From assembly GCA_003427395.1 (NCBI GenBank), contig BFEA01000035.1:1845338-1909337 (forward strand): DNA of 64,000 nucleotides, read 5' to 3'. Positions 8,095 to 58,772 of the stretch are shown in pieces (within the stretch, counting starts at the first letter, position 1; each line of letters begins with the position of its first letter). Origin of the DNA: Chara braunii (Eukaryota; Plantae; Charophyceae). The notes beneath the pieces were generated by a model that ran no database searches, was not told the DNA's origin, and worked only from the letters and a program-made list of their open reading frames with translations. The position numbers and the translations under genes are program-made.

Positions 8095-8420
8095 AACATG
8101 AAGTGGATGAAAATTTGAAAGCGGTTTCAGATGTTTTCGTCCAACTATTTAGATTGGGGAACCTGAAACCGCTTTCAGATTTTGACCCACTTCATGTTAT
8201 TTCAAGAATTTCAGGTGGGGACAAAAAACTGCAGTAATGACGTGAAACCCTTTTCAAAAGCTTCAGCCACGTCAAGTCATTACTGCGGTTTCATGTTCCC
8301 ACGTGAAATTCATGAAATGACATAAAGTGGCAGAAACTTTTGAAAGGGGTTTCACGTCCCCCCATCCAAATGGTTGGATGATGATACTTGAAACCCCTTT
8401 CATAAACTTCTGCCACTTCA
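8095..8420. repeat. Fold-back cluster of inverted repeats (MITE/foldback-like)
   Basis: 36-bp arms aacatgaagtgg...gcggtttcag (8095) and ctgaaaccgc...cttcatgtt (to 8198); gcagtaatgac/gtcattactgc; gtgaaacccttttcaaaag repeated in direct and inverted orientation. Confidence 0.7.
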
Positions 8421-9254: not shown

Positions 9255-9367
9255 TATTAACAATCATTCAAAATTATGTTTATTAACAATTATTTAAAAT
9301 AATTATGTTTAATAGCAATCATTCAAAATTATGTTTATAAACAATCATTCAAAACTATGTTTTATAA
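9255..9367. repeat. ~26-bp tandem minisatellite, about 4 copies
   Basis: aacaatcattcaaaattatgtttat repeated. Confidence 0.85.
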
Positions 9368-13634: not shown

Positions 13635-14348
13635 ATGCAGAGAAAAGTAAAGGAAGGTGAAGCAGTAGAAGAAATAACAAGCAGGAAACCCCTCAAGTTC
13701 ATAAGTAAGGAAGACGAAGCTATTGACCTTACCCAGGACACCCAGGACCACCAATCTGAGCTCATATCTACAGTAGAACAAGGGTCTGCAGTAGAACAGG
13801 GGGTACAAAACGCACAACCCTCGCAGTCACTTCAGATAGTCACATTGTCAGATCTCACCAGCAAAAGGCAAAAACTCAAAGCACGCCTTTCCCATTATGC
13901 CGATCAGTCCTCCCTCTCCAAATCAGGAATGGTTTTCCTCCCGGTAAGGTTCAAGGACGGTGAGTGGGAAGCGGACCTCTCAGCGATTGCCCCATCTCAT
14001 TATGGAGAGATCACTTTGCACGGAGCGGACACATCGGCAGGTAGGTCTGATGCCCTTAAATGGATAAAGGATCAATTCCCAGCAGGAGAGTGGGTCTCCC
14101 CCTCACTGTCATCATGCCTGGAGAGAGTAGTTGATTGCGATATATTTATTAAATATAGAGTAACAGACACTCCCTCCCTGAAATGGATGAACTCAGAAAC
14201 TATCAAAGACCTACAAATACTTAAAATAAAATCTAATCAGTTTTGGACGGAAGAGGATATCATCACTCTTCTTCTCATATTGGTACGTGAGGCTTCCCTC
14301 AAGAAAGGCGGGATTCTGGATAAGGTGACCTGGGAAGAAATATTGTGA
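13635..14348 (+). CDS. LINE ORF1 C-terminal portion (237 aa)
   Basis: Open frame ending 1 nt before the ORF2 ATG. Assigned by position; no domain recognised. Confidence 0.65.
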   Translation: MQRKVKEGEAVEEITSRKPLKFISKEDEAIDLTQDTQDHQSELISTVEQGSAVEQGVQNAQPSQSLQIVTLSDLTSKRQKLKARLSHYADQSSLSKSGMVFLPVRFKDGEWEADLSAIAPSHYGEITLHGADTSAGRSDALKWIKDQFPAGEWVSPSLSSCLERVVDCDIFIKYRVTDTPSLKWMNSETIKDLQILKIKSNQFWTEEDIITLLLILVREASLKKGGILDKVTWEEIL

Positions 14349-14349
14349 A

Positions 14350-17300
14350 ATGGGTAATAAAACTGAGGAAATGAATTTAATAGACCTACTCTATAATAAA
14401 GACAAAAATTGGAAGCTCCGCAAAAGAAATGCCGACTTGGACTTCATGTCACTCAATGTGAATGGTATTGCTTCAGCCAAAAACTCTAAACGCCAAGCCA
14501 TATTGAAACTCCTCAAAGGGGTAGGTGGGAAAGAGTGGCCTGACGTAATTTGCGTCCAAGAGACACACCTAATGAATACAACACCACACAATCATATTCA
14601 CAAGGAATTTTGGCCTCACACGGCGTACCGGGCACATGCCCCTAAACCAGGGAGCGCAGGTGTGGCGATATGGGTCCCACCGGATTCAAAAGCAGAGATA
14701 CTCAACTGGGAAGCAGGCCAACAAGAAGGAAGATGGGTATACATACTGGTAATGTTAGAATTAGAGGTAGTCAGTATACTCTATGTATACGGACTCAATG
14801 ACATAGGGGAGCGCCATTTTTTTTTTGAATGATTACTTCCCCACCTCCCGGTAGGTATCCCAGTGATAATGGCAGGGGATTTCAATGCTGCACCGGACCG
14901 TAATCTGGATTGATGGAATATTCCTAAGTCGTGCCCACCATATATAGAAACTGATGAACAAATTATATCTAAATTGTGCAATTCCTACAACCTGTTTGAC
15001 TCCTTTAGGAGATTGAACCCTACCACTAAGTTTTTTTCCTGCTTCACTAGAAGACATTCAAACAGACCTACTAAATCTAGGATTGATCTTATTCTAGCCT
15101 CTGAAGATCTTCAGGGAGGACTTCAATTTGTCTGCATCCTACCTAGAAACCCATATCCAAGCCTTGACCATGCAATGTGAATGGCGGTCTTTTCCTTTCG
15201 AAAGAAGCCAGATCAAGGGGATTCTATAAACTAAATATGTCACATCTTAAGGACCATGGCTTCCTTCAATACCTGGAGGACGTATGAGAATTCTAGAGAA
15301 AACAGAGAGCTCGCATCGACAATGACATCATGTGGTTCAACACTGGCCTAACCTTCCTAGGTCGTAAATGCAATGAATACTCTAAAGCCTTGGCAAAGGT
15401 AAGACATAAAAAAGAAACGGAAATCCTAAAAAAAAATCAAGAACTACAAGAAAAAGAGATAAGACCAGACGATCAAGACGCTTTGGAGCCAAGTGCAAAG
15501 GAAATCCAGACAATAGAGGATCAGTTACTCAAATACATGGAATACATATGACAGAGATTCATAATACAGGAAAAACTAAAAAAACATCAGATGAAAGGGG
15601 ATATGGACGCTCGCTTCTTTGCCATGGCCAATGCTAGGTCAGGGAGGACCACGATAGAGGCTTTAATAAATCCTTTCAACAACAATGAACCCTTAGCCAT
15701 TTCAACATCAGCCAGTATGAAAATAGCCAGGGATTTTTACAAAGATTTTTTCACGTAAAAAAACTCAACTATTCATCAAACACAAAAGGAGAAAGAAATT
15801 GATGAATTCCTAATCCCCTTCAACAAATCAATCACGGATGAACAAAAGAAGATATTGGAAATGCTAGTATCCAAGGAAGAAATTTGGAAGACCCTAATTC
15901 TCATGGAAGAAGAAGAAACACCAGGAATTGATGACCTTCCAAAAGAATTTTAGGAAGTCATGTGGGGTCCCCTCATACAAGATTTAATGGATTACTACCA
16001 TGCGGCATGGGAAACAGGGGATATGGGGGAAATAGTTAATCAAGGGGTCCTCACGCTTTTGTACAAAAAAATGATAAACTTAGTATTTGTAACTATCGCT
16101 CAATCACACTACTCACGGTGGTATACAAATTAGTTGCAAAGGTACTAGCAAATAAAATGCTCAAAGTCATAGCTGACATCATCCATCCAGCGCAAACAGG
16201 GTTCATCACTGGAAGGAATATACAGGACAATATTCTCCTCATAAATGAACTTATCAAAGTTGCACGCTAATCTAAACATAACGCAACATTCATCTTTATA
16301 GACTTTGAAAAAACTTACGATCGTGTAGATTGGTTCTTCCTGGACAAATGTCTTACAAAAAATGAACTTTGGGTCAAACTTCAGAAGATGGATCACAATC
16401 TTGCATCAAAAGGCAACCACCAGTGTTATGATCAATGACAACTTGACACCTCCAATTGATTTGCAGAGATCGGTCAGGCAGGGCGATCCATTGACACATT
16501 TTCTTTTCATCATTATTATGAAAAATTTAGCGGTTAATCTAAAGCAATACAATGATATTAGAAAAATACGAGTGGCGTCGATCCTAGAAGAGGCAATCCC
16601 CATGTGTTCTCTCTTTGCTGATGATCTTTCTCTGATGGTGGATGCATCACACGAAAATATGATTGCAANNNNNNNNNNNNNNNNNNNNNNNNNNNNNNNN
16701 NNNNNNNNNNNNNNNNNNNNNNNNNNNNNNNNNNNNNNNNNNNNNNNNNNNNNNNNNNNNNNNNNNNNNNNNNNNNNNNNNNNNNNNNNNNNNNNNNNNN
16801 NNNNNNNNNNNNNNNNNNNNNNNNNNNNNNNNNNNNNNNNNNNNNNNNNNNNNNNNNNTCTGATGGTGGATGTATCACACGAAAATATGATTGCAATTCA
16901 AGAATTAATGGAGAAATTTTGTAGATTAGCAGACATGAAAGTCAACTGGGGGGAAAAGACCTTAGGATGGTGGATAAACTATCAGGGAGTTAGACCACCT
17001 GAAACGCCCCGAATTAAATGGTTTCCTTTAGACAGGCCAATAAGGGTCCTCGGTATCTCGCTATCTGCTGAAGGGAAACCAACAATCAACGAGGAGGTTA
17101 TCTTTCAAAGTNCCCAGACCAAATTANAATTATGGAAGAATAAACACACATCTATAATGNGCAGANCTTTGGTGATTAATAATGTAGTACTAGCCTCAAT
17201 TTGGTACAAATCAGCAATTTGGGCCCTAGATAACAAATGGACTAAGTCCCTTCATCAACAACTCAGAGCCTTTCTGTGAAGAGGAAACCATGATTACAAG

Positions 17301-19112
17301 AGCGTCATTGGTAGAGTGGCTTGGACCTCTATCATTCAACCAAAGGCTAAGGGGGGCCTGAGAATCATTGATCCAACACTCCAAACCATGACACTCTCCA
17401 TCCAATGGATCAAGAGACTACCACTCAATCCTCAAACCCCTTGGAGTGGTTTAGCCTGGGAACAATTAAGGAGACTGGCCCCCCAGACAACGGAGACTGT
17501 TGACCCAGCTATGTGGCTAGAGAATAGGGACTGGTCCATACCGAGAGGCACAACCAAAGAGACGGATATGAACTAAATGACAAACAGGGCAGCAACCAGG
17601 AAGGACGTTATTAAGGATCCCTTCTGGCCAACTATTCTCAAAACATGGGGGAAGTTACCCCTACCAGACAAGCACTTCCTTGAACGATGGGATGAAATCA
17701 ACTGACAACCATTTTTTAACAATACATGGATAAGAGACCACCAAGGCATCACACTTCATTGCAATGATAATCCATGGAAGGGGTGGATCAAGAGAGGAGT
17801 AATCAGGATCAAGGACATTTGGAATGACAACTCTCGTGACTGGATTCCCCCACACATTCTACATGAGAGACTAAAGCATTGTCACCATGCACAAAACAAT
17901 CTAGACAGAATAGTGAAATTGATCCCTATTGAATGGATTAGAGTGCTCAGGAGAGGGGAAAAATTTCATGAAAGTGATTGGGTTGCGATGAAGGAGAATC
18001 CAAGAAGGGTAGGTAACGTCATCCTCATAGCCCTATACAAGGAGGTCTTAATTGCGCCATATGAATTAAAGGAAGATAATGTTATAATTATTAAAAAGTA
18101 TATAACCCCGATATGGATGCCGGTGGAAAACATCTTCAGAATCAGAGTTTTCTCACGGGGCGCGCAGTCGTGTCAGACTTTTCGACCTTTAACGGACATC
18201 GCAGACCTACCTATAGATCCTGAGTGCTGGACATGGGGAACCAAAACAGACTCAATAGAAAATTCAACATACATCTACATACCTTATCTATCAAATCAAC
18301 TTACCGGAAAATTAGACCCTAAATAAACTTGAAAGATAGGGTGGTGGAGAGATGGACGAAACAGCTGAATATCAGCAAGGAAGATTTGAGGAACATTAAA
18401 TGATTCAAAGATTCCAAGATCCAGCCATCGGAGGTAGCCTCCCTTCAGTGGCAGATTGAACACAGGTGTCTCCCTACTAATGATTGGTTGATAGACAAAT
18501 CCTCACTGGAGAAAAGGGGCATTGCAGACCCATGGTGCAAACTTTGTCACTCGGCGTACCACAGTTAAATGGCCTTGGGAATGGAAAGCAATCCTGCTTG
18601 CGCATTGGTCACCAGAACTGGAAGATAATTTCACTCAAAATCTGTTCACCATAAGTAGAAGTGCGGTTCTCTAGGCTATCTGGCGAAGAAGGAACACTTA
18701 CGAATGGGAAGATGCTAGACTGGATAGCCCAAAATTCACCGACAGCATAAAACAACAAATCCAAACCAATATACAGGACCAATGGATCAACATTAAAGAA
18801 AAAATCCAATCCAACTCATCCAAATATCAAATTAAAAAAATATTCCATAAATTCAGCAGCAATTGGCTGGGGGGGGGGAAGGGCAAAAAAATAGGGAGGG
18901 TGGAATGGGAGGGAGCGGAGAAGGAGGAGGAGAAGGTTCTTATCAGAAACTTCAAGTTGATTTTTAATGATTGGACTCAGGTGCATCCCTTGATACCTCT
19001 TCGTCCGGCTCGTGAGTTCCCAAGTCTTTTTACTCTACCTCAGAATGCATTGGTTCCACCGTCATGGTATGGAAACGACTCAGTTGCAGAAGAAAGGGGA
19101 AAGAAAGAGTAG
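14350..19112 (+). pseudogene. LINE ORF2 (APE endonuclease, RT, zf-RVT) with many stops and frameshifts
   Basis: SLNVNG, DVICVQETH, AGDFN, SRIDL, LDH (APE); FIDFEK, VRQGDPL, LFADD (RT); LQWQIEHRCLPTN..WCKLC. Confidence 0.93.
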
Positions 19113-19433: not shown

Positions 19434-22400
19434 TGTAATAAACGTTTGGAAGCCAGTCTCTCTTGGCCCAACGATTCTTGAGTTCCTAGAGATGTTGCGT
19501 GGCTCTAGCAGGGAGTTATAAATGTTTTTGTTCGTCAGCTGTTGCAGTGGGGTTGTTCTCTTATGCATCCTCTGAGGAGGCCACTCTCAGTCCCGCGGGT
19601 CCTAACTTAAGTCTCGTTGTCAGTGTGTCACCCTATATGGGTATAATTGCCCTTGTTCCTTCGTCCCTCTCTCGCATACCACTACAGTATCTGCACCGCT
19701 CCTCAATATTCGTCTTTGTGTGGCCAGGGACATCCTCAGGGGTTTGGCCATCCCTTCATATCCAGAGTCAGATTCAACGTACCACGCGGTGACTTCCAAC
19801 CACTCTTGTTGGGGGGGCTGTTCCACTCTATAGAACATGTCTGGCCTGGTGACTCCTTTAATTCGCACCCATTCTCCTTGTGCCACCTTATCCGTCTTTA
19901 GCAGATCTATCCATTGCGAGGGGATAGCTTCTCTCAACTTTCTCACCCGTTTCATTCTTCATGCTTTCCCAATGAGCATTGTCGTCACCTCACTATCTGT
20001 GCACCCGTCTTTGTGGTCCTCGTCCCATAAGTGTCGTACTTTGAATACCCCCCCGTCTGCCCGCTTCCATCTGAATGTTCCCCGCCGACCCGCCATGGGA
20101 AGCGGTCACCTTCTTCATCGCATATGAATCTGTTGTCAAACAACAACTGGTTGAAAATTGCGTACGCAGATGCTGGTATCCGGCATCTCAGCTGCACCTT
20201 TTCCACAAAGTCAATTTGGTGGACCAAACAGTGCCTCTGTGAATATGACCTATCAGAGAGCTATTCAGCAGGCATATATTTCCACTATCTCCTCCGCGAC
20301 CTGTAGTGCATATGTCGAGTGGGCTCGTGTAACTTCTTGCCATGTGTCCCCCCATTGTCCCCAGCACGACCCAAATTAATTGGCGAATTTGGAGGGCTAT
20401 TATCTGGAATCTCGGATCCAACAGTCCCAAGCCCCCGAACCGTCTTGGCTGAATCACCTTGTCCCCTGTCACTCCGCAAATTGAATCTTCAGCAACCACA
20501 TTGTTTGACCATAAGTTGCCATGAATTGCATGTTTGATATACCATAAGGTTCGTTTACCTGGCATGTGCATTGCCCCCACGTACCACAGTGTTGCCAACA
20601 CCGAATTTTTCACTACCGGGTCCTTACCGACCCATGCTACCTTTTGCACTCCAGGCCTTGAGCCTAGCCAGATGGTGATATGTTTCACGCCCCCATAAGC
20701 TTGGGGTCAAGTTTGCTCCTAAGAAGGTCATTCATTCCCCATTCTCGAATGTCGGAAGATCCCATCCCTCCAGCGGGTCCACCCTCGGGGGCATCACTGC
20801 TTTAGATTATTGCCAGTTGACTCGTGCCCCAGAGTACTTGCAAAATACACCCAGATCCTCTTTAAGCAGTCCCAACTGTTAAACCGCCGACATAATGATT
20901 GCACCTGTATCATCCTCAAAGGCCGTCGTCTGCAGCGTCTTTGATCATGTCTTCAGGCCCTCTAACCTATCATCCACTCATAATATTTCATGCAATGATG
21001 ATTCAATATAGATGACATTAGGGCGGGGTACAGTGGGCAGCCTTGCCTAACTGACCTTGTGACCCTCAAACTGTCCGATCTTACTCCATTCACCTGTATG
21101 ACAGTATTTGCCCCCCTGAGCAGATTGCGGACCGACGCGCCATGCTTTGCAGCATGGACTCCCAGCGTACTCGATCGTACACCTTCTCCAAGTCTATGGA
21201 TATAAATGCTCTCACTCGCCCTATGCACTGATCCTCCTCTAGCACCTGTTGGGCCATCAGGGCGTTTGTGAGAATTTGGTGCCTTGCCACAAAGCCCGTC
21301 TGTGTGTGATAGATGATGTGTGGTAAACGACCATTTCGTCAAAATGGACATTTTTTATTTTTTGAACGAAATTGAAACCGAGTTTTTTGTCCGAAAACTC
21401 GTCAAAATTTGCTGTTCCTGAGGGTCCAGCGTTTGTAAAACACTGGACCCCCTAGCTGTACATGGACTTAGCTTGAGACCAGGCACCTCCAGGCAGGACT
21501 GCCTGGAGGTACCTGGTCTCAAGCTAGGTCCATGTACAGGCAGGGGGTCCAGCGTTTTACAAACGCCGGACCTTCAGGAACAACAAATTTTGACGAGTTT
21601 TCGGCCAAAAAACTCGGTTTCAATTTCGTTCAAAAAATAAAAGATGTCCATTTTGACGAAATGGCAGTTGGTAGGGCGTCGCTAATGTCGTTCGCCGATA
21701 CTTTAGCCAATATCTTATGTACTGCGTTCAAAATTGATATTGGGCGCCAGTTCCGCACATCCTCCCTCGACCCCTTCTCGTAGAGCAAGACCACATAGGT
21801 GTCAGCGAATCCCAACGGGAATGTTCCGACTCAGAGTGCTTTGTTATAGGCCGTTGTGAGCAAGGTAACAAAGAAGTTACAAAAATCCTTGAATAGTTTT
21901 ACCGGGATCCCGTCCAAACTTGGTGCTTTCAATTGCGGCAGGGCAGCGATCAACCTTTCCACCTCCTCCGTCGTCACATCTGCTTCCATCCTGCATGTGC
22001 TATCGAAGTTGAGGCGACTCTGGATATGCTTCCATACTTCCTGCTCTGGCTCTGCTGCCATAGCTGCAGACGTCCATGCCTCCTCTTCCATGAGCAGCTA
22101 TTGGTAGAACTTCGTGACGTACTTTAAAATTCCCCCTGTGTAGTGCTGCCTCTCCTGCTGGTCGTCAAAACGACGGTCCATTACCGTCATCAGCGGGGCC
22201 CCTTCTTTTCCCAGCGCAGCAAAGAATTGTCACGTCACACGTTCCCCCACTAAATCAACAGTTCCTTGGTGCGCCTCCCCCACCGAATTGCTTCCTCCTC
22301 CTGCCACTCCCTCCACCCCCTTGCGGCCTCCACCCTTTCTGCCCACCATTCGTCGTCCGACTGGTCTTCCCCAGGACCGGAGTTCAACTCCTTCAATTTG

Positions 22401-26038: not shown

Positions 26039-26157
26039 TTTTTTTTTTTTTTTAATTTGGACCATTTCTCGATTTATGCGTGTCATCCTTGCGCAGGGGC
26101 CATGCTAATCTTCTTTCTCTCTGTATCGTTCCAATTTTAACGGATGTCCCGAAGGAC
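26039..26157 (-). pseudogene. U6: Full-length U6 snRNA retrocopy with poly(A) tail and 14-bp TSD
   Basis: Reverse complement reads GTCCTTCGGGACATCCGTTAAAATTGGAACGATACAGAGA...GGTCCAAATT plus an A tail. TSD acaagggcgatttt at 26025-26038 and 26158-26171. Confidence 0.96.
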
Positions 26158-35517: not shown

Positions 35518-38500
35518 AGGGTGAAAAGGTTCTTAGTGAAGCTATCCTCCGGGTCTGGGGACCAGTGTGCTAGCAGAATTGCCTTCCACTCCCAAGACCA
35601 TTTATGTCTAGTTTCTAATTGCCCCCATATTTTGTCCCACCAACGCCACAGCCAGATGGAGCCTGTGCACTCGAGGAAAATATGTTCGATCGTTTCTGGT
35701 ATCTTTCTATTTGGGTACGCGGATTTACAAAGTTTGCACCATGGGTCTACAATACCTCTTTTCTCCAGGGAGGTTCTGTCTAGCAGCCAATAATTTGTGG
35801 GGAGACACCGGTGTTCAATCTGTCACTTAAGGGAGGCTACATTGGAAGGTTTGATCTTGGATTCTTTGAACCATTTAATGTTTCTCAGATCATCCTTGTT
35901 GATATTCAACTGTTTCATCCATCTCTCCACCACCCTATCCTTCAACTTTATTTTGGGTCTAATCATCCGGTAAGTTGATTTGAGAGATAGGGTGTGTAGG
36001 TGTTTACTAAAATTCATGTTGAGCCTGTTCTTGGTTTCCCACGACCAGCACGCAGGGTCGATGGGCGGGTATGAGATGGGCGTAGATGGTCTGAAGGCGA
36101 GACACGACTGTGCATCTAGTGGAATGACTCTGATTCTGAAGATATTTTCCACAGGCATCCATATTGGAACAAGATCATTGTTAAGGTTTATTACATTGTC
36201 ATCTCTTAGTATATATGGGGCAATTAAGGCCTCCTTGTCTGGGGAGATGAGAATGACATTAGCTATCCTTCGTGGATTCTTCTTCGTGGCCACCCAATCA
36301 CTTTCTTGGAATTTCTTCCCTCTCTTGAGCACTCTAAGCCACTCAATGGGGATCAGTTCCACAATTTTGTCTAGATTACTTTGTACATGGTGACAATGCT
36401 TTAGTTTTTTGTGGAGGAGATGTGGGGAAATCCAATCAAGAGAATCTTCATCCCAAATATCCTTGATCCTAGTAACCCCCCTCCTAATCCAACCCTTCAA
36501 TGAATTATCATTACAATGTAGTGTGGTGCCTTGGTGGTTTCTTATCCAAGTATTATTGAAAATTGGTTGTTGATTAATCTCTTCCCATCTTTGGGGGAAG
36601 TGTTTATCTGATATGAGTAGCTTCCTCCAATTTTTGAAAATAGTTAGCCAGAAGGAATCTTTTATTATGTCTTTCCTTACTGCTTCCCTGCTAGACATTT
36701 GAGTCGGGTCTATCTCTTTGGTTGTGCCTCTTGGGATTGACCAATCCCTATTCTCTAACCACATGGCTGGATCTACGACCTCCACTGTTTAGGGGGGCAG
36801 TCTTCTTAATTGTTCCCAAGCCAGGCCACTCCAAGCGGTTTGAGGGTTGAGTAATAGTCTTTTGGCCCATTGAATGAAAAGTGTCATGGCTTGGAGTGCT
36901 GGGTCAATAATTCCCAATCCCCCCTTGGACTTTGGTTGGATGACTGAAGACCAGGTCACTCTACAAATAAGATTCTTATATTCATGATTTCCTCTCCACA
37001 AGAAGGCTCTAAGTTGTTGGTGAAGAGATTTGGTCCATTTATTGTCTAGGGCCCAAATTGCTGATTTATATCAAATTGAGGCTAAGATTACATTATTAAT
37101 CACCAAGGATCTGCCTATTATCGATATGTGCTTATTCTTCCATAGCTCTAGTTTGGTCTGGGCACTTTGGAAGATAACCTCATCATTAATTTTGGGTTTC
37201 CCTTCGGCAGACAACGAGATGCCTAAGACCCTTATTGGCTTGTCGAGGGGAAGCCATTTGATTCTAGGCATTTCTGGAGGTCTTACTCCTTGATGATGTA
37301 TCCACCATCCTAGGGTCTTTTCCCCCCAGTTGACCTTCATATCTGCTAATCTATCCTAGGGTCTTTTCCCCCCAGTTGACCTTCATATCTGCTAATCTAC
37401 AAAATTTATTCATTAATTCCTTTATCGCATCCATATTCTTCTGTGATGAATCAATCATCAGAGAAAGATCGTTTGCAAAAAGAGAGCACATGAGAATTGC
37501 GTCTTTCGGTATGGACGTCACTTGAATTTTCCTTATATCCTTCTGTTCTTTCAGATTGACCGCTAAAACTTCCATTATAATTATGAAGAGAAATGGTGTC
37601 AATGGGTCGCCCTGCCTGACCGATTTCTGTAATTCTATTGGAGGTGTCAAACTGCCATTAACCATGACTTTTGTGGTTGCATTTTGATGCATGATAGTGA
37701 TCCACCTTCTGAAACACGGTCCGAAGTTCATTTTCTCGAGACACTTGTCCAGGAAAAACCAATCCACATGATCATAAGTTTTTTCAAAGTCTATGAAGAT
37801 AAATGCTGCATTATGTTTAGATTGGCGTGCAACTTTGATAAGCTCATTGATAAGGAGGATATTATTATGTATGTTGCGTCCTGTGATGAACCCTATTTGT
37901 GTTGGGTGGATGATGTCAACTATTACTTTGAGCATTCTGTCTGCTAATGTCTTTGCCACCAATTTATAAACCACTGTGAGGAGCGTGATAGGATGATAAT
38001 TACGGTCATTTAGTGTGTCTCCTTTTTTGTATAAGAGTGTGAGAACCCCTTGATTAACTATTTTCCCTATATCCCCTGCCTCCCAGACCGCATGGTAGTA
38101 GTCAATTAGGTCTTGTGCGAGCGAACCCCACATAGATTCTCAGAATTATTTTGGGAGACCGTCAATTCCTGGTGTCTTTTCTTCTTCCATGAGGATTAAA
38201 GCCTTCCAAATTTCATCATTGGTTAATGACATTTCCAATTTCTCCTTTTGTGCTTCCGTGATTGATTTATTAAAGGGGATTAAAAATTCATCGATTTCTA
38301 TTTCCTTTTGTGCAAGAGGAATAATTTTTTTTTGAAGTGAAGAGTTCTTTATAAAAATCTCTAGCTAGTTTCATACTAACTGCTGTTGAGATGGCTAAGG
38401 GTTCATTATTATTGAAAGGGTTGAATAAAGTCTCTATCGTAGTCCTTCCGGTTCTAGCTCTGGCTATGGCGAAAAAACGCACGTCCATATCGCCTTCCAT

Positions 38501-39776
38501 TTGATATTTCTTTAGCTTGCCACGTATTCTGAATCCTTGCCATCTATATTCCATATAATTGAGTAAATGATCCTCTAATGTTTGAATCTCCTTTGCTATT
38601 GGCTCCAGGGTGTCTTGATCATCTGGGTTTATTTGTGTTTCTTGTAGTTCTTGAATTATTTCAAGGATTTCAGTTTTTTTTTTATGTCTTAACTTTACCA
38701 TGACTTTAGAGTACTCATTGCATTTACGACCTAGGAAGACTAGGCCGTTGTTGAACCACGTAATGTAATTGTCGATATGAACTCTCTGTTTTCTCTAGAA
38801 TTTCCATACATCCTTGAGATACTGTAGAAAATTCTGGTCCTTGAGGTATGAAGTATTAAGTTTATAGAACCCCTCACCTTGATCCGGTTTCTTCCGGAAG
38901 CAGAAAACTGCCATGCACATTGTGTGATTAAAGCTTGGAAATGAACTTCTTGGTAGGATACATGCAAATTGGAGCCCTCCCTGAAGATCTTCAGAGGCTA
39001 GAATAAGATCAATCCTGGATTCAGTAGGTCTGTTTGAATGCCTTCTGGTGAAGCATGAAAAAGACTTGGTGGTAGGGTTTAATCTCCTAAAGGAGTCAAA
39101 CAGGTTATGGAATAGCACAATTTGGATATGATTTGTTTATCTCCTTCTATATAGGCCGGACACGGCGTGGGTATATTCCATCTATCTAGGTTACGATCCG
39201 GTGCTGCATTGAAATCTCCTGCCATTATGACCGGGATGCCTACTGGAAGGCGGGGAAGTAATGATTCAAAGAACAATCGGCGTTCCCCTATGTCATTGGG
39301 TCCATATACATTCAGTATACTGACCACCGCTAATTCCAACATCGCCAGTATGTATATCCATCTTCCTTCCTGCTGGTCCGCTTCCCAGTTGAGTATTTCA
39401 ACTTTAGAACCCGGTGAAATCCATATCGCTACACCTGCGCTCCCTGGTTTTGAAGCATGAGCCCGATACGCCGTGTGGGGCCAGAATTATTTGTGAATGT
39501 GGTTGTAGGATGCTGTGTTCATTAAGTGCGTCTCTTGGATGCAGATCACATCAGGCCACTCCTTGCCCCCTACCCCTTTGATAAGATCGAGTATGGCTTG
39601 ACGTTTGGAGTTCTTGGCAGACGCCATACCATTCACATTAAGGAATCTGAGGTCCAAGTCAGCGTTTCTTTTGAGGAACTTCCAATTTTTGTCTTTGTTG
39701 TGGAGTAGGTCTATTAAGTTCACTTCCTTACACTCATTACCCATTGCATACTATTTTCTACCATCTTTCCTTAACC
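35518..39776 (-). mobile_element. LINE copy B (family 1), degenerate ORF2 (APE-RT-zf), 3' end missing
   Basis: Co-linear with copy A: MGNECKEVNLIDLL, DVICIQETH, AGDFN, FIDFEK, VRQGDPL, LFAND. A 46-bp tandem duplication lies at 37308-37399. Confidence 0.92.
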
Positions 39777-46589: not shown

Positions 46590-47290
46590 ACTCATGAGTA
46601 CACCGGTGATGTCATAGAGCCCAATACACAACCCTTTCTTCCTAAAACAAAGAGATTTAGAGTGTATGTATCCACTGGGTGCGGATTCCAGGTTCCCATA
46701 AGAGCCCTGTCAAGTCCCATTGTCATGACATTGAGATACCCAATTGACCCCAAATTGTATTCCACCATCTCCAAAGCCAAATGACCCCATGCTCAATCCT
46801 CTCTAAAACTTTCCTTGAAGGGAATGCAGAAGAACAAAACTTGCACTAGGGTAAGGCAATGCACTTCTGCTCGAATGTGGTTTTGTCAATAATCTAGTCA
46901 TTCGTAGGTAAACATCTATGATCAATCTGCCATTGCAGGGAAACAAACATACCTGGTTTGAATTTGACCGTTTTGAAGTTGTCGCATCCATTGAGCCTCT
47001 GCCCTATCTCTGAGATTATTATTATTATTATTATTATTATTTTCACATTTAAACATATTTTGAGTGTGGGAAGCCACTTAGAGAGGTGATCAAAGCGGGC
47101 CTCAACATCAGTGGATCTTACTGACAGAATGTGAAGCAACCGAATAAACATGCATCCCCCACCCCTTTTACCGACGTCCAAATCCAGGAAGTCGGGTCAA
47201 ACACAAGTTTATCAATTGAGAGAGGCAATTTAAAGGTTACCCGATTCTTTTTACTTTGAAGCACTCTTATCCTGAATAATTGGCTAGAGA
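46590..47290 (-). pseudogene. Highly decayed family-1 LINE C-terminal fragment
   Basis: SLQWQIDHRCLPTND and a downstream CKFC remnant. Confidence 0.7.
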
Positions 47291-47309: not shown

Positions 47310-50300
47310 AAAAGAGATAAAAAATCCCAAAACAATGCAGTTCAAGGTTTACACTTTAGCATAAAACCACATCGTTGAAGACATGGGACACATGCCACAT
47401 ACCTTCTCCTCACAACACCTGAAAAAATTTCGACGTTTGAAAAACCCAACTCTAGCATGTTCTCTATGCAAAGTCACAAGAGATACTAGAAGTAAGGCGT
47501 GAATCCGCGTGATTACTATTGGTCTCGTCATGCGAAAGACTTATACCACCCGGTAATCACATATATCGGTTTGCTTGGGTTTTTCCACACTCTTTCTGCA
47601 TTCTTGAACTTATGCATGGAGAGGACCTCTGTCACATTCTCCAAAATGAGGATTCTTCTTTCAAAAAACTCCATGATGTTGTAGTTGGTGTCTGTTATTG
47701 TCAACCTCAATTGTTTGTGATGTTAGTTTGTAATTCTATCCATTGTTGTTTTAATTTTTTTTTTCTTCTTCAAGATCGTTAGTTTTGAAGAAGCCTAACA
47801 ACAAGATATCATCGACATATCTTTTACCAACAATTATTTTTTCATCCCTTACAAGGCTGTTTAGAAAACTTTCTTCAACATACATAGAAACCAGCGACGC
47901 CAGAGGGAACTTGCCCACCCATGAGAATGTAAGTGCCATGTTTGAGTATGATCCCAACAAATTTGAAGAACACATTATCCAAGAAAAAATTCATCAGCTT
48001 CTTTAAGTCGTTCAATCCGATCGTGACAATTTTTCCACCCACCGTCACATTTCCGTGTATTTGAACTCGAACCTTAAAACTCCCTTTTACTGTATATTTA
48101 TAAAAAATCCAGTCAACATGAAAACATCTCTTTAACATCATATATTCGGGCGCACGTGCTAAGTTGCTGATTTTTCGCCCGTTCGGTGACTGCTGCAATA
48201 CAATTATTCAGATTGTTACCAGAGGGTAGGTTAAAGTGACGCTTTTGAGTTTTTTTTTAACTTTTTATCATAAGATTTAACGCTTTGACCAAGTTGCTTC
48301 CAACAAATTAGGTAGGGTGAAGGTAAGAAAGACATTTGTGCCTTTTCTTCTCAAAATCTTTATCTTTACTCATGATAGACACCTTCTGAATTTTAAAAAT
48401 TTCCTTCGTTGTTTTATTTTCCAATTCATTCCACGTTTTTGTTTTTAATTTTTTTCCTCATATCTCACAGGATATCACTTCCGACTCTCTCAATTGTCTC
48501 GAAGTTCGAATTATCATTGAAGAACTTTTTATTTCCTGCGTAGTACTACAAAGGACATTCAACTAAGGTAGTATCACGATCTTGGTCCAATGGGGAAAGG
48601 GTCGGTCCCCCAAGGGTCACTTTTATACCGTGGATGTATTTACAAGTGACTACCTCGCGGAAAATCTCAGTAAGCCCACATTTTCGGAGCTTGAGTGACG
48701 AGATTCTGAATGTATCAGTAATCTCGACCTTCCTAAGCTTATTCAAGGCAGTCTTTCACACATTATTTACGGGTATTAATACTTTCACTTCGACCATGGC
48801 ATGAAACATTTCTTGAATTATGGTGGAAATGATCAACAAAATATACATCTTTTAGTCTAACCTGAACGTGCCCGTCAATTTTGGGCAGTTCAAACCTATC
48901 GTAGTCACAACCTTGAGTTACCTTAGAAATAACCACTTTATGGTTATGCAGAATATCCGCAATGGTCTTGACTTTACTCGAGACCACCCGTGACTTTTTC
49001 TGCATCAGGTCAGCAAGTCCCTAAGGTTCAAACCTCCTCCCAATCCATTCACATACGTCGGTATGAACATTACTCTTATCAATGGTGAAGTAAAATGATA
49101 TTTTTAGAATAATGTTTTGCTTGGGGTTAAATCCTAGTCTCCTTTTGAGCTCCGTCGCAATGAGACTCCTAATCACTTGGTGTCCCCTTTTTGTACTTAC
49201 AAATTTTACGCCTTTCAATAAACCCAGAAGTCCACTATTGCCCTTACATCTTAGATAGATCTTCCAAGGAGCACGAAGGAGGGTGATTAACTCAACCTTT
49301 CGCCGCTTTCCTTCAGGTTCAGCTCTGACCAAGCAGTTGAGATTTCATTCACCTCGAGATTCAAACACATATTTAATATCCTTAAGTAAATAATTACTAA
49401 AATTGTCACTCATTTTCTATTCTTCGTACACCAATTTAAGAAACCTCCATGATACAAATCATTTTTTTCTCGTCGTTACCGAAAAAATTACGTATTGGTC
49501 TGCTCAGACCTTTAGCATGTTTAAAGATATTCATGAGGTTAGGAGTGCGTTCATGACCCTTATCAATAGACGAAAAAAAGATCGGATCTCATTTGTGTGA
49601 AATGCTAGTTTCTTTTTTTGTATTTTTTTGTTTTTTCCTCGGTTTGCATCTAGTATTACTTTTTCTCGCATTGTGACCAGGATTTTCTTGTCGAATGATA
49701 CGTCTTTCCATTTTTAGTAGTTCAGTTTTGTCACCAACCTATAGAGGCATAACATTGTACGATTCATGTTTCATTTTGCTCAACCACTTATGCACTTTGA
49801 ACACAAGACATTTGTTAGCAGTAAAAGCGTGCTTCTTCCATCTCTCAGTAAGAGAGCCACTCCTTTGTCCTACGTATGTCTGTTTACAAAAGGGCAATAC
49901 CATCGAATAGGCGCAAGATGAGACTTGAGAGCTAAGTACTACATCGCTCCAACATTATTCCAATATTTGATAAACGTAGCTCGCCACTTCACATATCTAA
50001 TAACACACGAAAAAATTGTGCCCATCTTGAACTCAAGTTACCGTGTGGCAAGAGATGGTATGACAAATGTTTCTGCGAATGCACAATAAAGACCATTTCA
50101 AAGGGAATCAGTTCCTTGAAACGGCCTCAGACTCGTTTCTGTCCGATCCGGCCTGCTGTTTAGGCAATTCACGCTCAATTTCTAAGTTGGCATCGTCGTC
50201 TGCGCCTTCATCTCTAGCAATCATTCCGGTGAATTCGTTGGTGTCTTGTTTAGCTAGCTCTGAAACTCCCTTGTCCTTCCTTTCCCACTTGATGTTCCTC

Positions 50301-51100
50301 TTCATGCACAACGCCTTCACCTTCTGCCTTGTCATGTCCATGTAGTGGTGCAATGTTTCGCGCATGTACTCAACAGTCCCCATCTCTTGTCTCCCTCCCC
50401 CCGGATCATCCGCTTCCACGGTTCAAATGGATCTTATCGCCTTCATCGTTGGTACCTTCACTTTTTCTCCCCGGATATCAGGTTCTATACCGTGCTAAAT
50501 TTTCCAGATGCCCCTTCCTTTGATCCTGATGTGTTATCTAGGTTGACCTTGTCGATGATCTTCGTCGGCATTTTCATTACGTCATCGAGTTTATCACTCT
50601 CTTTTGCGTTGGGTTGAGCAGGTACTGGTTGCATACCTTCGATCTTAGCTTCTTGGGGTTTCTTGCCCTGCCCTTCATCGTCAGAGGAGAGCAAAATACT
50701 CGACTCCCTGATCTTTTATCCCCTGGCTTCGAGATTGGATCTAGATTTCTGACGTTTAGAGGCAGGAAAGTTGGGACCAACGATCCTCGTACACTTTTCG
50801 TTGCTGCCACCATCTTCTTTGTTTTTTTCCGCCTTAAGCTCAGCCAACAACTTAATCATTCTATCTCGTTCCATATCGACCACCATCATCTTTTTATCGA
50901 CGACCTCAAGCTTGTTCGAGATGCGCTTCAGCGATGCTCCAAAGTTGCTAGCCATCCAAACCTTCATGTCTTTTTCACTATCTTCCTCGCTGGTCGTGAC
51001 TTCACCGCGTTGCCAGTGCGAATACCCTTACAAGGGTATCCGCCCTTGTTTTTGCAAGTGACAGAAAATAAGTTTCGTTTAGAGTCTCAGTACAACGAGT
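47310..51100 (-). mobile_element. Degenerate Penelope-like element with N-terminal GIY-YIG (Chlamys/Naiad architecture)
   Basis: About 49670-49930 translates as CAYSMVLPFCKQTYVGQRSGSLTERWKKH...MERRIIRQENPGHN. RT remnants downstream (FFLDNVFFKF...ILMG, RYVDDILL). Upstream SAP/HeH-like QKVKALCMKRNIKW. Confidence 0.8.
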
Positions 51101-52099: not shown

Positions 52100-52419
52100 G
52101 CTGTTCGCGTGGGACCATTTTCCCACTTCGGTCTTCAAAGTTCTCATTTGAATATTTGCTACTACCATCGAGAATCTGTGCCAGGACCCGCTTTACTTGA
52201 CTCACACTACAATTTGTGCGGCAGGCCTGCACCTTCCTATTCCTCGTAGTGGCGGAGTCGGGACGACCAAGCATAGGTCGAGCGCCTCAGCGTCGTTCGT
52301 ATTCAGGGCGGACGAAGTCAGCAGGTGAGTTGTTACTCACTCCCTAGCGAGTTTTGACATTTGTGACCATCATCCTGCTACCTGTATCAGCACCCCTTTG
52401 GGGTCTAGGTTAATGAGCG
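52100..52419 (-). pseudogene. Decayed LSU rRNA fragment spanning the LR7 site
   Basis: cttcaaagttctcatttgaatatttgctactacca and gcaggtgagttgttac-cactcc-tagcg are conserved eukaryotic LSU antisense sequence. Confidence 0.92.
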
Positions 52420-52699
52420 GATTGTCATTGACCCGCGGTCGGATAATCGCTGTCGGATTTGGGTATGGGGCGAATGACTAACTGAGCCACCTAGTAGTTG
52501 GTCGTGTTTGAGACTTTCCCCACGAAAGCCAGACCAGCCGAAAACAGCAGCAAGCGCTGGGCGCTGTGAGGTCGGTACGACTGACCGCTGCGATAAATCA
52601 CAAGGGAAAGACGGACACTGGGAGTGCGGAGTGCAGTGAATAGCAAAACGAAGATGGCGAGGAGCTAGGCAGGGCGCAGTGGAAAGGGAGTAGCACACA

Positions 52700-54590
52700 C
52701 GATTGTTGACGGAATCGGGCAAGGGAGGAGTCTACGATGGGGTTTTCAAGGACAACGAACGCGAATCTGCTGTTAGTTTGAGTAGAGAGTTAGTGAATTG
52801 GGAGTCAGGAAGAGGAAGCCGTGTGCAGAGATGGCGGGAAGCAAAGAAAGAGGAAAGTGAGAAGCACATATCTCCTGCGTTTCCGAATTGATTTCGGCAC
52901 GGCGAGAGCCGAATCTATTGTTTTAAGCCAGGGCGATTTCGTTGGTAAAGTTAGTTTTTATGGTTGGTTAGTGGAATACGAGTTAGTGGAGATAGAGCGG
53001 CGTGAAGGCAACGAGAAGCAAATATGGTAGGAATTGAAAGATGAAGTTTTCACTGGATTCTGCATGAAATTGAGCGAACTTAAAGGCAAAGTGGGGGTTG
53101 TTGACCACAACGAATTCGATGGTGGAAATCGGAGTTAGGAGCTAGTGGGTAGTTTCGACGGTACAGAGGTTAGGTGCTGTGTAGAGAGGGTGGCATGTGT
53201 CTATCCATGTTTTGACGAAAGATTCATTCTCGTAGCGCTTTTGGTGAGTAAAGAGTATGACGCCCCCTTCACCGTCGCCTTCATTGTTGTGAGCGCGATG
53301 CTCTATCTCATCGTCAGAATAATCGATGTTGTGGAGATCTTCATTGGTGGCCGAGTCGCCATTGCAGTGGGATCTTCGTCTTTATGACTTCGAACTGCCG
53401 GGCTTGGTCATCATCAAGCTCCTCGAGATATGCTGGCCCCGCTCACTATTCTACCAGTGTATCATCCTAATGATGCTTGAAACCACATTGTTGTCTGTGG
53501 AAGCTGAAGTCATGGTCGTAGCAAGCGTTCCAAGCGACTGTCTATTCCGTTCGGGCGTTGAGAAAAAGTGCATGAATCTAGATGTGATTGCGAGCAGATG
53601 CGTTGAATTGTCGAAAGCAGGAATAAATAAAAGTGAAGCTACGGTGCCAAATAACATGCGGGAAAGAATCGGTGAGGAATCCTCTCTTTCTTTTTATGAG
53701 AGTGTCATTCTCACTTGGCACGAGGTGGTGAAGGTCGGGCGGCTTGTTCCTCGTGAAAGTGATATTCCTTTACTATTACAACCAGCCGGATCTTCGTTCC
53801 GGTTGGGTTAGCAGTGATCGCTTGATTGATTGAAGGTGATTTTTTGCCCCAAGCCACTAGTACATATCATCGAGGCCATGGACGTTATCTTGCTCGTGGT
53901 CTGCAAACTTTTCATCATCTTGGAGCTCATCGGTTTTGCCCCTTACAAGCATGAGGAAGCAGGGGTACACCTGACTCGACGTTCTTATGTGCGGTGATCC
54001 TCTTTATCGTGCTGTTTATGCATGGCCGTTCTTAGTTTGGTAAAGTGATCTGCCTGATGAATTCCGATAACGAATAAGACTTTGGTCTGCTAAATAGTTG
54101 TGTAGAGACTTTTTCCTCGTGGCCAGCCCCCTGTGACTGTTAGAGGTGAAGCATAGTCTGCTACTTCTGGTAAGGCTAGTGCAGCAGAAGCAAAGGGAGC
54201 CATGAAGTGCAGCAAGTTGAGGCGCTAACACCGCCTCCCGACAGAGTTGTAGTTGCCTATGAGGATCCTAACTCTGCTTGGGTAGGGTGTTGTTTGAGTT
54301 GTTGCTGTTTTTTTCTGGTAACCGATTGCATACTCATGGTGCTGAGGTCCTCTATAGCAACGCGATGCAGTTTGGGGCACGGACGTTCGAAGAACTGCTA
54401 TTCCCCCAAACAACGGGTTGCAACTTGGAAATACTGGTGTCTTGGGGCTATGCATTAATTGAACGCAACCATTTTAGGTTGCGTAGTGGTGATTTGATCC
54501 GAAACGAGCCCAAGCCTTGAAGGGAAGTTGTTGTTGCTAGTTGAAGAGGCGCCAGAAAGTCAACAGCTGGCAGTTTGACTTTTAACTGAC
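52700..54590 (+). pseudogene. Possible decayed ORF of unknown family upstream of the structured RNA modules
   Basis: Chain of protein-like + strand ORF pieces (52821-53030, 53145-53387, 53326-53811, 54278-54520); no motif recognised. Confidence 0.3.
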
Positions 54591-54740
54591 CAAGCTACTG
54601 CGCACTTTGACCATCATTGCGGGGCCCTCAGGCGCATCAAGGATTCAAGGCCCACTCACGCGAGTATGGGTGCACCTCTCTTGGATGTAAGCGACTTAAC
54701 CTGTCTCATTCTGCCCTTCTTATTCCAAGTCTAGTCTATT

Positions 54741-54897
54741 GGTTTGGAGAGGAAGGTGGCAGGTGGGATTGCAACCCGTAATCCGTGCCACGGCCTCTGT
54801 GAGAGGTTTCCCCACCGATTGTGGGAGCTTTGCTGGAACCTAGGCGAGGTTCTGGAGATAGGGAACTGAGTGGTAATCTTTATCTCCTTCTCTAACC
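54741..54897 (+). ncRNA. Compact multibranch RNA, five hairpins closed by a basal stem
   Basis: ggtt(t)ggagagg/cttctctaacc encloses gtggca..tgccac, ggcctc/gaggtt, cccac/gtggg, ctggaacct/aggttctgg and gagataggga/tctttatctc. Confidence 0.6.
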
Positions 54898-55138
54898 CAA
54901 CTAAAACCCTTACCTACGTACCTTGCTACAATTTGACTAAGTATATTGAATGCATCCCTACTGAATTTATGTTTGACTTTCTGAACTTGAATCAAAGTTA
55001 AGTAAAGGAATGCATGCACAATCTAAGTTCTACGTTTGTTGGTTGTCGGAATTCAGATTAAAAAAGGGTTGTGAATTGGGGGAAGGCAGAAAGAATGTGG
55101 TTTTGTTTGTGATTGTCTGGGTCAACCGAAGGTTGGGC

Positions 55139-55892
55139 TTAGTTTCTAAGTTGAATGACTCATTGCTATGTTTATTTTATTTGCCGAAAGGAACAAAGTT
55201 TGTTCCTAAGTTGGATGGTCTGATTGCTCTGACTTGTGAGGGTTGCCTGTGTGTGCATTTTCAGAGACCAAGTTTTGTTTCTAAGTTGAATGACTTGGTC
55301 GCCTTGATTTATTTTGGGGTTTTCTGAGTGAGAGTGTACTTTGTTTCTAAGTTGAATGAATAAGTCTGTTTATGTTTTTTTATTGTTTACAAGAAAAATA
55401 GTTTGAACTTTGTTCCTAAGTTGGAAGACTCAAACTTCTGTTTGTTTATTCTGAGGGGATTAGGTGAAGGAAAAAACAGTAAATTTGTTTCTAAACCACA
55501 CACATGTTGGAACCAAGGAATGGTATGATTTATATTCTGTTATTATGTTACTTATGAACATGCTAGTCAGATTTTGTTTCTAAGTTGAATGATCTGACTA
55601 TAACTTATCATAATAAAGAGAGTACAAATTAAAAGTATTTATTGATGATAAAATGGGGAAGGTTGAACTTTGTTTCTAAGTTGAATGGTTCAGTCCTATG
55701 CTACCGTAAAAGACTAAGAGTAGAAAGTTATATATAACTTGGCTACTTTAAACAATTCAGGGCAACTAGGCATTGTTTCTATGTTGAATGACATAGTCAT
55801 ATGTCAAATGAAAAGAAAAGTAGTAGTGCCCTGTGTTTGTGTATATCCAATGGGTGGGCCAGACTTTGTTTCTAAGTTGAATGGTCTAGCTT
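55139..55892 (+). repeat. Array of 10 stem-loops with constant apical motif TTTGTTTCTAAGTTGAATG and unique spacers
   Basis: Cores start at 55139, 55199, 55274, 55340, 55409, 55484 (disrupted), 55573, 55669, 55772 and 55865. Confidence 0.9.
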
Positions 55893-56099
55893 TACACCTT
55901 ATGTAAGTTGGGTATAAGGGATAAATCATTGAGACATTATGAACTATTATTGACAAGGTTCAACTCTGAGACTGGGTGAGAGTACTTACCATAGTGGTTT
56001 GGACTTGCATGTGGCTAGGTGAGAGTTTTACTTAGTCTGAGTTTCTGTTTGATAGGTAGTTACTTTAGTTGCTTGCCACGTGCTAGAGATATAAAAGTT

Positions 56100-58200
56100 A
56101 GTTCAATTTTCACATTTTCTGAGCTGATTTTTTATTTTACTTAGGTGAATTTTCTCATTTTATATGATCATTTATTTCACTTGGCTTTGTATAAATTTTG
56201 GAAAGTTACTTTTTCTATGGAAAACACTGCTGAAATTTTTACAAAACCAAGGAGTTAGTTAAATTTTGGGTTTTCAAAGTTCAATTTTTGTCTAAGTTTA
56301 TATCCGGCTTAGTATGAATCTGAAAAACTCTTTTTTCTAGGGGAAGTGTTGCCCAAAATTTTGCTAATTCGGGGAGTTAGACAAATCTGACTTTGGGAAG
56401 TCAGAATCATTTCAGAATCTGTATTTAGCTTTGTATAAATTTTGGAAAGGTACTTTTTCTACGGGAAGCGCTGCCAAAATTTTTAAAAATCTAAGGAGTT
56501 AGTTAAAATTTGTCTCGACAAGAATTCAAGTTTTGCTTTGAGTTCTTATCTGACTTAGTATAAATCTGGGAAATCTACTTTTCGAAAGAAGATGCTGCCC
56601 AAAGTTTTGCTAATTTAGGAAGTTCGACAAAATTTGACTTTCTAGAATCGCAGACCATTGTAGTTTTCATATTCGAGCGAGTATAAATTTTGAGAAGACA
56701 CTTTTCCTATGGGAAACACTGCCGAAATTGACCCTGTGTAGTGCATTGAATTTTGGTTGAAGCTATATTCTAAGGAGTATGAGGGCAGAGAGTGGTTGAA
56801 GTTGACCCCGTGTAGTGCATTGACTTTTGGTTGAATCTTTGATGTGATTGCAAATATGTTTGTGGTTCGGACTACGGATTTGATTGCCTGCGAGCACATA
56901 TATATGGATGAAGGGAATCCCACTGTGATTGTGAGAAGTGACCGTCTCGTGTTTATAAATCTTTAGATATATATATATATATATATCGAGTGTTTGCACG
57001 ACCTATTGCGACCGTGCATAAGGGTTGAGTTGATTTTTATTGCGTTTGAGAGGAAAGGGAGACCCCTTTTTCAACCCTTTGTTTTTTAGAATTATTATAG
57101 TTGAACGTTGGAGTCCGTGACAGTCGTCAACGTCAAAACCATGGATTTCTCTCCAGACCCTGGATGATGAAGCTTGTTTCTAGGGCGATAAAACCCGACC
57201 GCCACAACAGGCTGGAGCCTGTGTACCACCCACTCTCCGCAAGATGCAGAAGAGAGTGTGGTTCTCAACCACCTTGACGGTTGTCTAGCGTCGAGAGATT
57301 AACCCCTCAAAGCGCGTGCTAGTCAACACTTGAGTGGCGAACACGACCCTCGAGACCATTGAGGGCCGTGTGATTATGGGTACTACATAGTACTCCATCG
57401 TTGCGACTGCTTACGTATGCTTGCATGGCTAGTCGATATGAGAAAGCCCTGCGTCCGGACGGTTTCATCTTAACTCTCGCGTGTGACGCCTAACTGATTT
57501 CCATGCCGAAAGGTTACGGGTTGGATACTGAAGGGACTAGGAGTGTTTGCTTGCATGAGTAATTTGATTTTATGTTTTTAGCGTGATGTAACGAGTGGTA
57601 AGAAGGATGTGTCCTAGTCGACCAACAACGAGTCGCACTCGGGACTTCCGCTCCCGGATGCGTCGGTTCGTCATTTTAACCAACTTGCCACCAATTCATA
57701 AAGTGGAGATTATACGAGTTACTTTAAAAAAAAAAATGAAAAAAAAACTTTAAAACCCTATAAACATCAAGCCAAAAATGTGTTTTCATGCAAAATTCAC
57801 TCAATTTTCAGAAATTTTCAGGGCTGACCAAAACAGTCAACTCCAAGACCCCAACAAACACCAAACTTGGCACACACAGACCTTGACCAAAAATAAAACA
57901 AGGCAAAAAAAAAAAAAAAAAAACAGAAAAAACTAAAAAAGATGATCTTCAATGCACTTTTCAGAAATTTCAGGGTTGAGGGGGTTAACCAGGGCTGAAA
58001 AGTGGGGGTCCCTGTTAACCGCTTATGCCAAAATAGTCAACTGCAAGACCTCAACAAACACCAAACTTGGCACACACAAACCTTGCCAAAAATAAAACAG
58101 GGCAAAAAAAAATAAAAAATAAAAATGATCTCCAATGCACTTTTCATGGTTGAGGGGGTTAACCAGGGCTGAAAAGTGGGGGTCCTTGTTAACCGCTTAT
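56100..58200 (-). mobile_element. Family X second copy: degenerate ~120-bp repeats, conserved non-coding module, tandemly duplicated terminus
   Basis: Inverted homology to 6400-8050 and 886-1150. About 57830-58027 is duplicated at about 58030-58200, each unit ending ggttaaccagggctgaaaagtgggggtccYtgttaaccgcttatg. Confidence 0.7.
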
Positions 58201-58772
58201 GAGAATTTTGGTACTCCGTCCAATATCGATTATTGCCAGACCACCTGCCTCGACCCTTCCCTCGCCCAGTCCCTACTCCCCTTGCGTACATGCAGTCTTG
58301 ATACTTCCTTCAGTTAACTTCGGTCCTCCTACTCTTCACGTTTTGTAAGTGGATCTTCGATGCGATGTCTGGGTGTAGTAATCACGCCGTGTGTCTTTGA
58401 CATCAATAGTTGTTGAGGTATGTCAAACTCTCAACACAACTTAAGAGATATCAGTAGCGACCCGTCACTCGTACGCGAGTCTAGCGACTAAGCGGAATCA
58501 AGTCTTCTCGTCATAGAGGCAGCGCAAGGTGTTGTACTCGAACAAATAATCGTAAAGGTAATAAAAAAATAGTCAAATAATAATAATCATCGTCATCGAA
58601 AGATAGATGAAAATGAGTGCGCATGCGCTTCTTTTAGTACACAGACTATGCGAACGTAAGTGAGTGTAGAGTGTAAGGCACCAGGTGAGCAGTTCCAAGC
58701 GTGACAATAGGGTCGCTCATTTGGCTTGGGTAAGAGATAAAAAATACCAGAAACAATACAGTTCAAGGTTTA

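Follow-up and report, generated by a model that had tools for sequence, protein, structure and literature searches.

The analysed window, a stretch of 64,000 nucleotides from Chara braunii (contig BFEA01000035.1), is eukaryotic and repeat-rich, and contains LINE remnants, a Penelope-like element, a U6 copy and a piece of LSU rRNA. Two LINE copies with endonuclease and reverse transcriptase (RT), at 14,318-18,560 and 35,714-39,776, are about 80% alike and lie in opposite orientation. The best RT relatives found for them were 32-41% identical and included a Closterium protein. A full-length U6 snRNA copy (26,051-26,157, minus strand, Rfam 83.6 bits) lies near LINE remnants. The decayed Penelope-like element occupies 47,400-51,100 on the minus strand, with an upstream ORF, and carries a GIY-YIG-like motif near 49,900 before an RT with YVDD near 47,820. 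This endonuclease-before-RT order matches the Chlamys clade, which has been described from Chara braunii (PMC8557442). Near the element, at 47,015-47,041, is an (ATT)n tract. Between the Penelope-like element and a low-copy reading frame lies a diverged eukaryotic LSU rRNA fragment (52,267-52,442, minus strand, Rfam 71.5 bits), beside which a purine tract followed by TGATACA on the minus strand could be an LTR start. Also present are a 171-bp inverted repeat, nearly perfect, whose halves are 2 nt apart (21,326-21,669), and a 200-bp tandem duplication (57,828-58,201), with a palindromic 60-nt segment that recurs at 45,529.

An array of ten hairpins at 55,130-55,892 sits inside a high-copy repeat (54,560-57,720, no strand assigned), which was delimited by a step in DNA depth and by a second copy that is 68% alike. 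The left edge of the repeat lies at about 54,560-54,615 and the right edge beyond 57,720. When a DNA run was aligned to 52,500-57,720, depth rose from about 14 in the flank to 800-210,000 from about 54,600 rightward, which is 100 to 10,000 times the flank, summed contig depth not being a copy number. This contrast places the array in an element that is highly repeated and at least 3.1 kb long. The second copy, at 6,420-8,038, is reversed, covers the right-hand (3') part of the repeat and has many small indels; a covariance model search found no array in it. A palindrome-rich insertion (8,095-8,428) is present in this copy where the array side would begin.

Read on the plus strand, the repeat begins with a folded 160-nt domain and the array, which are followed by three repeats of 244 bp, a TATA-like tract and some 700 further non-coding letters that are conserved. 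The multibranch domain upstream of the array (54,739-54,900, plus strand) was identified from conservation, RNA reads and folding. It is among the most conserved stretches in the relatives and is the main site of stranded RNA reads; its folding energy was -69 kcal/mol on the plus strand and -52 kcal/mol on the minus strand, and two majority variants of the relatives change A-U to G-U on the plus strand. Two overlapping splice-donor-like motifs (54,900-54,925, minus strand) lie between the array and this domain. The three tandem repeats (56,181-56,760, no strand assigned) are diverged, measure 244-248 bp and also occur in the second copy. The TATA-like (TA)n tract has an initiator-like pyrimidine stretch downstream on the minus strand (56,940-56,986); both are conserved in the second copy, and together they appear promoter-like. 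Beside the repeat, a low-copy, decayed reading frame on the minus strand (52,400-54,560) is poor in stops (20 against 40 ± 6). It gave no Pfam match and no homolog matches, and is possibly the internal region of the array-bearing element.

The high-copy repeat is probably an LTR or LTR-like terminal region of a Chara retrotransposon, an assignment made on plausibility. The depth step at about 54,600 and the diverged second copy identify a high-copy dispersed repeat, as an LTR would be. Self-BLAST of the window gave no paired LTR, a scan for solo-LTR ends (TG...CA) with 4-6 bp target site duplications (TSD) returned only chance-level candidates, and neither a gag/pol match nor Ty3 motifs were found in the window. 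A TGACAG-like start is present near 54,561 in one expressed relative. The left edge can be read as a purine-rich tract on the plus strand or as a 7-nt PBS-like TGGCGCC on the minus strand, neither of which is canonical. A pseudo-LTR of the neighbouring Penelope-like element was considered and rejected, as 54.5-57.7 kb is unlike the region beyond the RT (about 47 kb).

The array is a real feature. A search of the whole window for the 19-nt core with up to three mismatches gave nine matches against 0.05 expected, all on the plus strand within 55,139-55,883, and a truncated tenth core starts at 55,484. Start-to-start distances are 60, 75, 66, 69, 75, 89, 96, 103 and 93 nt. The ten cores, spacings and arms of the initial annotation, which had been made from the sequence alone, were thus in place, with the correction that the core of unit 6 is truncated and nine of ten are intact. 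Each unit is a two-tier hairpin with a variable outer stem of 7-9 bp, an asymmetric internal loop, a 3-bp inner stem and a six-letter loop (UAAGUU on the plus strand, AACUUA on the minus strand). The core search, a test in which arms were swapped, covariation and RNAalifold all describe this structure, to which no strand was assigned. The spacers are 23-66 nt long, A/T-rich, of low complexity and U-rich in the manner of a UTR. They are non-repetitive, as had been claimed: pairs were mostly unalignable (z mostly below 2, highest 3.1), with weak residual similarity among spacers 1, 4 and 5 (z up to 3.1). Tandem Repeats Finder reported no row at the array, and with the unalignable spacers this led us to reject a tandem satellite.

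Rfam covariance models gave no match at gathering score on the array and three chance matches elsewhere (E 1.6-3.9), so that known structured RNA families (ribozymes, CsrB, snoRNA and others) were rejected. Scans for tRNA and bacterial promoters were uninformative. Among metagenome and viral contigs, the core search gave 16 single matches, no arrays and no similarity to the window, and these matches were taken as chance. A covariance model built from the nine intact units found nothing in the window beyond those nine, and no second array bearing another loop emerged from a generic hairpin scan of the window. A 26-bp tandem repeat at 9,251-9,362 has short hairpins and a TTGAATGA stretch that resembles the 3' half of the core, and is probably unrelated. 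The array had been described as CRISPR-looking though not CRISPR, and this was borne out: spacer length is inconstant (period 60-103 nt), the flanks of the repeat pair with each other, the only cas-named Pfam match (E 0.15) fell below the cut-off, and the surroundings are eukaryotic repeats. In the open literature covered, no description of such arrays was found for Chara or for other retrotransposons.

The units differ in state of preservation, and none was assigned a strand. Unit 1 (55,130-55,166, core 55,139-55,157) has decayed arms. Unit 2 (55,190-55,226, core 55,199-55,217) has an inner stem of TCC/GGA, and one half of its core recurs, inverted and without mismatch over 9 bp, as its left arm. 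A fold-back of this kind occurred in 43 of 2000 array shuffles (P about 0.02), and the left arm is a possible template-switch product. Unit 3 (55,265-55,301, core 55,274-55,292) has a perfect 8-bp stem, which one related contig suggests to be longer in relatives. Unit 4 (55,331-55,367, core 55,340-55,358) has weak arms. Unit 5 (55,400-55,436, core 55,409-55,427) shares the TCC/GGA inner stem and has an outer stem of 7 bp on the plus strand, or of 9 bp with tandem wobbles on the minus strand. Unit 6 (55,475-55,511, core from 55,484) is broken after the first 11 core letters. In a contig of the same locus from the DNA run, 20 extra letters at 55,493, absent here, restore the core of unit 6 and give a spacing of 109 nt. 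Unit 7 (55,564-55,600, core 55,573-55,591) has a perfect 9-bp stem and unit 8 (55,660-55,696, core 55,669-55,687) one of 8 bp, including two G-U pairs on the plus strand. Unit 9 (55,763-55,799, core 55,772-55,790) has a variant loop and weak arms. Unit 10 (55,856-55,892, core 55,865-55,883) has one mismatch, at 55,860, where most related contigs (43 contigs, depth 2786/3855) carry a pairing T that repairs it. The units at the array ends are common to many related contigs.

Complementarity of the arms within units, another claim of the initial annotation, was evaluated on the nine letters flanking each side of the core in all ten units. Cognate arms formed 55 Watson-Crick pairs out of 90, compared with 33.0 ± 4.9 when arms were permuted among units (P = 1.5e-5, an optimistic value, since the units are related by duplication). 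In the nine intact units 77.8% of cells pair, falling to 31-46% after a register slide of one to three columns. Changes on both sides were found in 11 of 14 pairs, and RNAalifold returned the same two-tier fold with such changes in 8 of 10 pairs; this covariation was measured within one array, and duplication of the units overstates its independence. Arms of different units have only about three of nine letters in common, and the non-palindromic loop letters are near-invariant. The double change from TTC/GAA to TCC/GGA in the inner stem was located, as annotated, in units 2 and 5, whose arms are unrelated; it is synonymous at both codons in one minus-strand frame. The fold that had been drawn for every unit held in local context for units 3, 5, 7, 8 and 10 and was weak for units 1, 2, 4, 6 and 9.

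In this one array a conserved loop stands on covarying stems, which is the pattern of a multivalent protein-binding RNA array. As the initial annotation had argued, the array is no simple decayed satellite. Template switching that perfects imperfect inverted repeats is a documented type of mutation (PMC3820800), and templated correction of this kind can also change both sides of a stem where its pairing is not under selection.

The evidence on strand is divided. G-U pairs had been taken to mark the plus strand, a claim that failed on counting: of the cells given by nine arm positions in each of nine units, 7 are G-U, which pair only on the plus strand, and 11 are A-C, which pair only on the minus strand. 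Against shuffled sequences, the array folded with z = -2.1 on the plus strand and z = -4.4 on the minus strand. Over 54,425-54,949, the stranded poly(A) libraries X5 and X7 gave first-mate-minus reads only (summed depth 23 and 45 versus 0), and in the array bins first-mate-minus depth was 1.5 and 2.9 versus 0.02 and 0.21 for first-mate-plus. These reads correspond to plus-strand RNA provided that the libraries follow the usual chemistry, their orientation being uncalibrated. Library X6 shows the opposite mate excess, which runs from the TATA-like tract as far as the right-hand half of the array; its depth tracks DNA depth (Spearman 0.87), as DNA-like background does. Stranded RNA-seq thus favours the expected plus-strand expression in X5 and X7, and the reverse in X6. 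The plus strand is favoured by X5, X7 and the upstream folded domain, and the minus strand by the promoter-like signals in both copies, the stop-poor decayed frame and library X6. The plus strand is, in our judgement, somewhat the more likely of the two.

The copy of the array in the window is a decaying member of its family and is probably silent. Decay is evident from the 20-nt loss in unit 6, the family T at 55,860 and the differences from relatives, which are mainly A and T in the window against G and C in the family, as deamination predicts. The CpG observed/expected ratio of the array copy is 0.2. Nearly all RNA reads were 82-95% alike to the window and therefore come from relatives; no read of X5 or X7 matched this copy at 99% identity. 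RNA depth over the array stayed below 2 in both libraries. The stranded poly(A) reads from relatives cover the folded domain and are thin over the array, and they indicate that the family is transcribed at a low level. The poly(A) libraries, of a type that could not reveal small RNAs, had no read-end pile-ups. Overall, the earlier interpretation was partly supported; it had missed that the array sits in a high-copy mobile repeat and that this copy is decaying.

We infer that the units fold in RNA, somewhat more likely that of the plus strand, that they bind protein and that they belong to the LTR of a Chara retrotransposon. The array would then be a set of selected, single-stranded candidate protein-binding sites on retroelement RNA, serving packaging, export or localisation, a reading to which we give a probability of about 0.55. 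Each unit would present the same six-letter loop and asymmetric internal loop, with the sequence of the stem free and its pairing kept. A constant loop and internal loop on stems that vary and still pair are characteristic of sites that are recognised as folded single strands, and ten such sites in a row in the terminal region of a mobile element suggest cooperative binding of one protein. About ten copies of that protein may bind the element RNA together, the candidates being Gag or an accessory protein of the element, or an RNA-binding protein of the host, and the bound RNA would be packaged, exported or localised. The conserved domain beside the array, which has its best fold on the strand seen as RNA in X5 and X7, was counted in favour of this explanation. 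Structured cis-RNA elements (RTE and MTE) serve the export of mammalian retrotransposons and are unstudied directly in plants (PMC12786077). By analogy with MS2 tagging, and as a tentative extension that we regard as rather unlikely, a family-specific element protein might read the loop as a packaging or transport address, and non-autonomous elements might hijack the matching autonomous partner.

The strongest rival to RNA binding is a motif array in duplex DNA, an enhancer or anti-silencing array in which the 19-bp core would be a site for a transcription factor or an element protein and the arms would have arisen by template switching. We hold it to be a serious though unlikely alternative. 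There are precedents in the motifs that recur in cis-regions of plant LTRs (PMC4728375) and in the tandem target motifs of VANC (PMC5735166). Template switching is documented (PMC3820800) and the 9-bp fold-back of unit 2 (P about 0.02) resembles its product, the wobbles show no strand bias and RNA is sparse. Yet a double-stranded site has no use for flanking arms that keep one register in all units, the one core change that is tolerated, in two units, keeps a 3-bp stem that would be too short for an obvious template switch, and the opposite pattern is known from the palindromes of Sireviruses, in which the arms are conserved and the centre is variable. Much less probable is a role of the hairpins in single-stranded DNA or cruciforms, at the stage of reverse transcription, strand transfer or integration, where the strand would be unimportant. 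The mostly Watson-Crick covariation and the folding of both strands (z -2.1 on plus and -4.4 on minus) would suit such a role, the strand bias of the adjacent folded domain argues against it, and no comparable case of an LTR with ten sites of this kind is known to us.

A second proposal of the initial annotation, that small RNAs are released by processing at the units, is one that we consider improbable; either the spacers or the hairpins would be set free, and they might serve as decoys in silencing. The stems of the array are too short for Dicer-type precursors, the spacers vary in length (23-66 nt) and are of low complexity and UTR-like, and read-end pile-ups are absent, in libraries unsuited to show them; in favour are the repeat-spacer layout and the finding that hairpin regions of maize LTRs are hotspots of siRNA (PMC4728375). 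A neutral by-product, in which an old hairpin minisatellite had its core homogenised by conversion and its arms symmetrised by template switching, is highly improbable in our view. The decay of this copy (unit 6 deletion, CpG ratio) and the weak similarity among spacers 1, 4 and 5 agree with it, against which stand the near-invariant core beside unalignable spacers, the empty Tandem Repeats Finder result and the presence of the array-end units in many related contigs. A decayed protein repeat, with the core encoding I-Q-L-R-N-K on the minus strand, is barely credible. In its favour, three divides seven of the nine spacings (P = 0.008, post hoc) and the double change is silent in that frame. 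Most phased intervals, however, contain stops, stop counts (13-20) are close to those of shuffled sequences (20 ± 4), the 109-nt spacing at unit 6 of the other sample speaks against it, and the complementarity of the arms specific to each unit is left unexplained.

Little is known of how LTR elements of the plant lineage select, export and package the RNA that they make; according to a recent review, its export has not been studied directly (PMC12786077). The binding-site array preferred here offers a testable candidate signal, a repeated hairpin of fixed loop in a high-copy element, and if a cognate protein exists, hairpin and protein together might serve as a new orthogonal RNA-tagging tool. 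If the arms stem instead from template switching, the array is a caution that covariation in mobile repeats need not mean selection on RNA.

Several known systems resemble the array in part. The CsrB and RsmZ sponge RNAs and the MS2 and PP7 arrays consist of many stem-loops with one loop and variable stems, and bind protein multivalently. Unlike the Chara array, CsrB and RsmZ are bacterial stand-alone RNAs with GGA loops, and the MS2 and PP7 arrays are engineered. CRISPR arrays likewise alternate a near-constant repeat with unique spacers, whereas in Chara it is the variable flanks, and not the repeat, that build the main stem. In the VANC target arrays of VANDAL elements, short motifs are multiplied in non-coding regions of a transposon and vary between families, as in Chara; these belong to a DNA transposon, the targets are double-stranded and lie in tandem repeats, and covarying stems are absent (PMC5735166). 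No VANC-like gene was identified in the window. The palindrome arrays in LTRs of Sireviruses (maize Ji/Opie) have in common with the Chara array their fold-back motifs, their place in the non-coding terminal region of a high-copy retroelement of the plant lineage, and a motif copy number that varies and decays with age (PMC4728375). They differ in that the arms are conserved, the centre varies and the motifs form close pairs, read as DNA cis-elements or siRNA sources (PMC4728375), while in Chara the loop stays constant and the arms change from unit to unit; membership in this class was rejected on the opposite pattern of conservation. RTE of IAP and MTE of MusD are structured cis-RNA elements of retrotransposons that recruit proteins to genomic RNA, as the favoured reading would have it, and they are single complex mammalian folds instead of a row of ten identical loops (PMC12786077). 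Both kinds of feature, fold-back motifs that recur within LTRs and RNA signals of retrotransposons that are structured, are already known.
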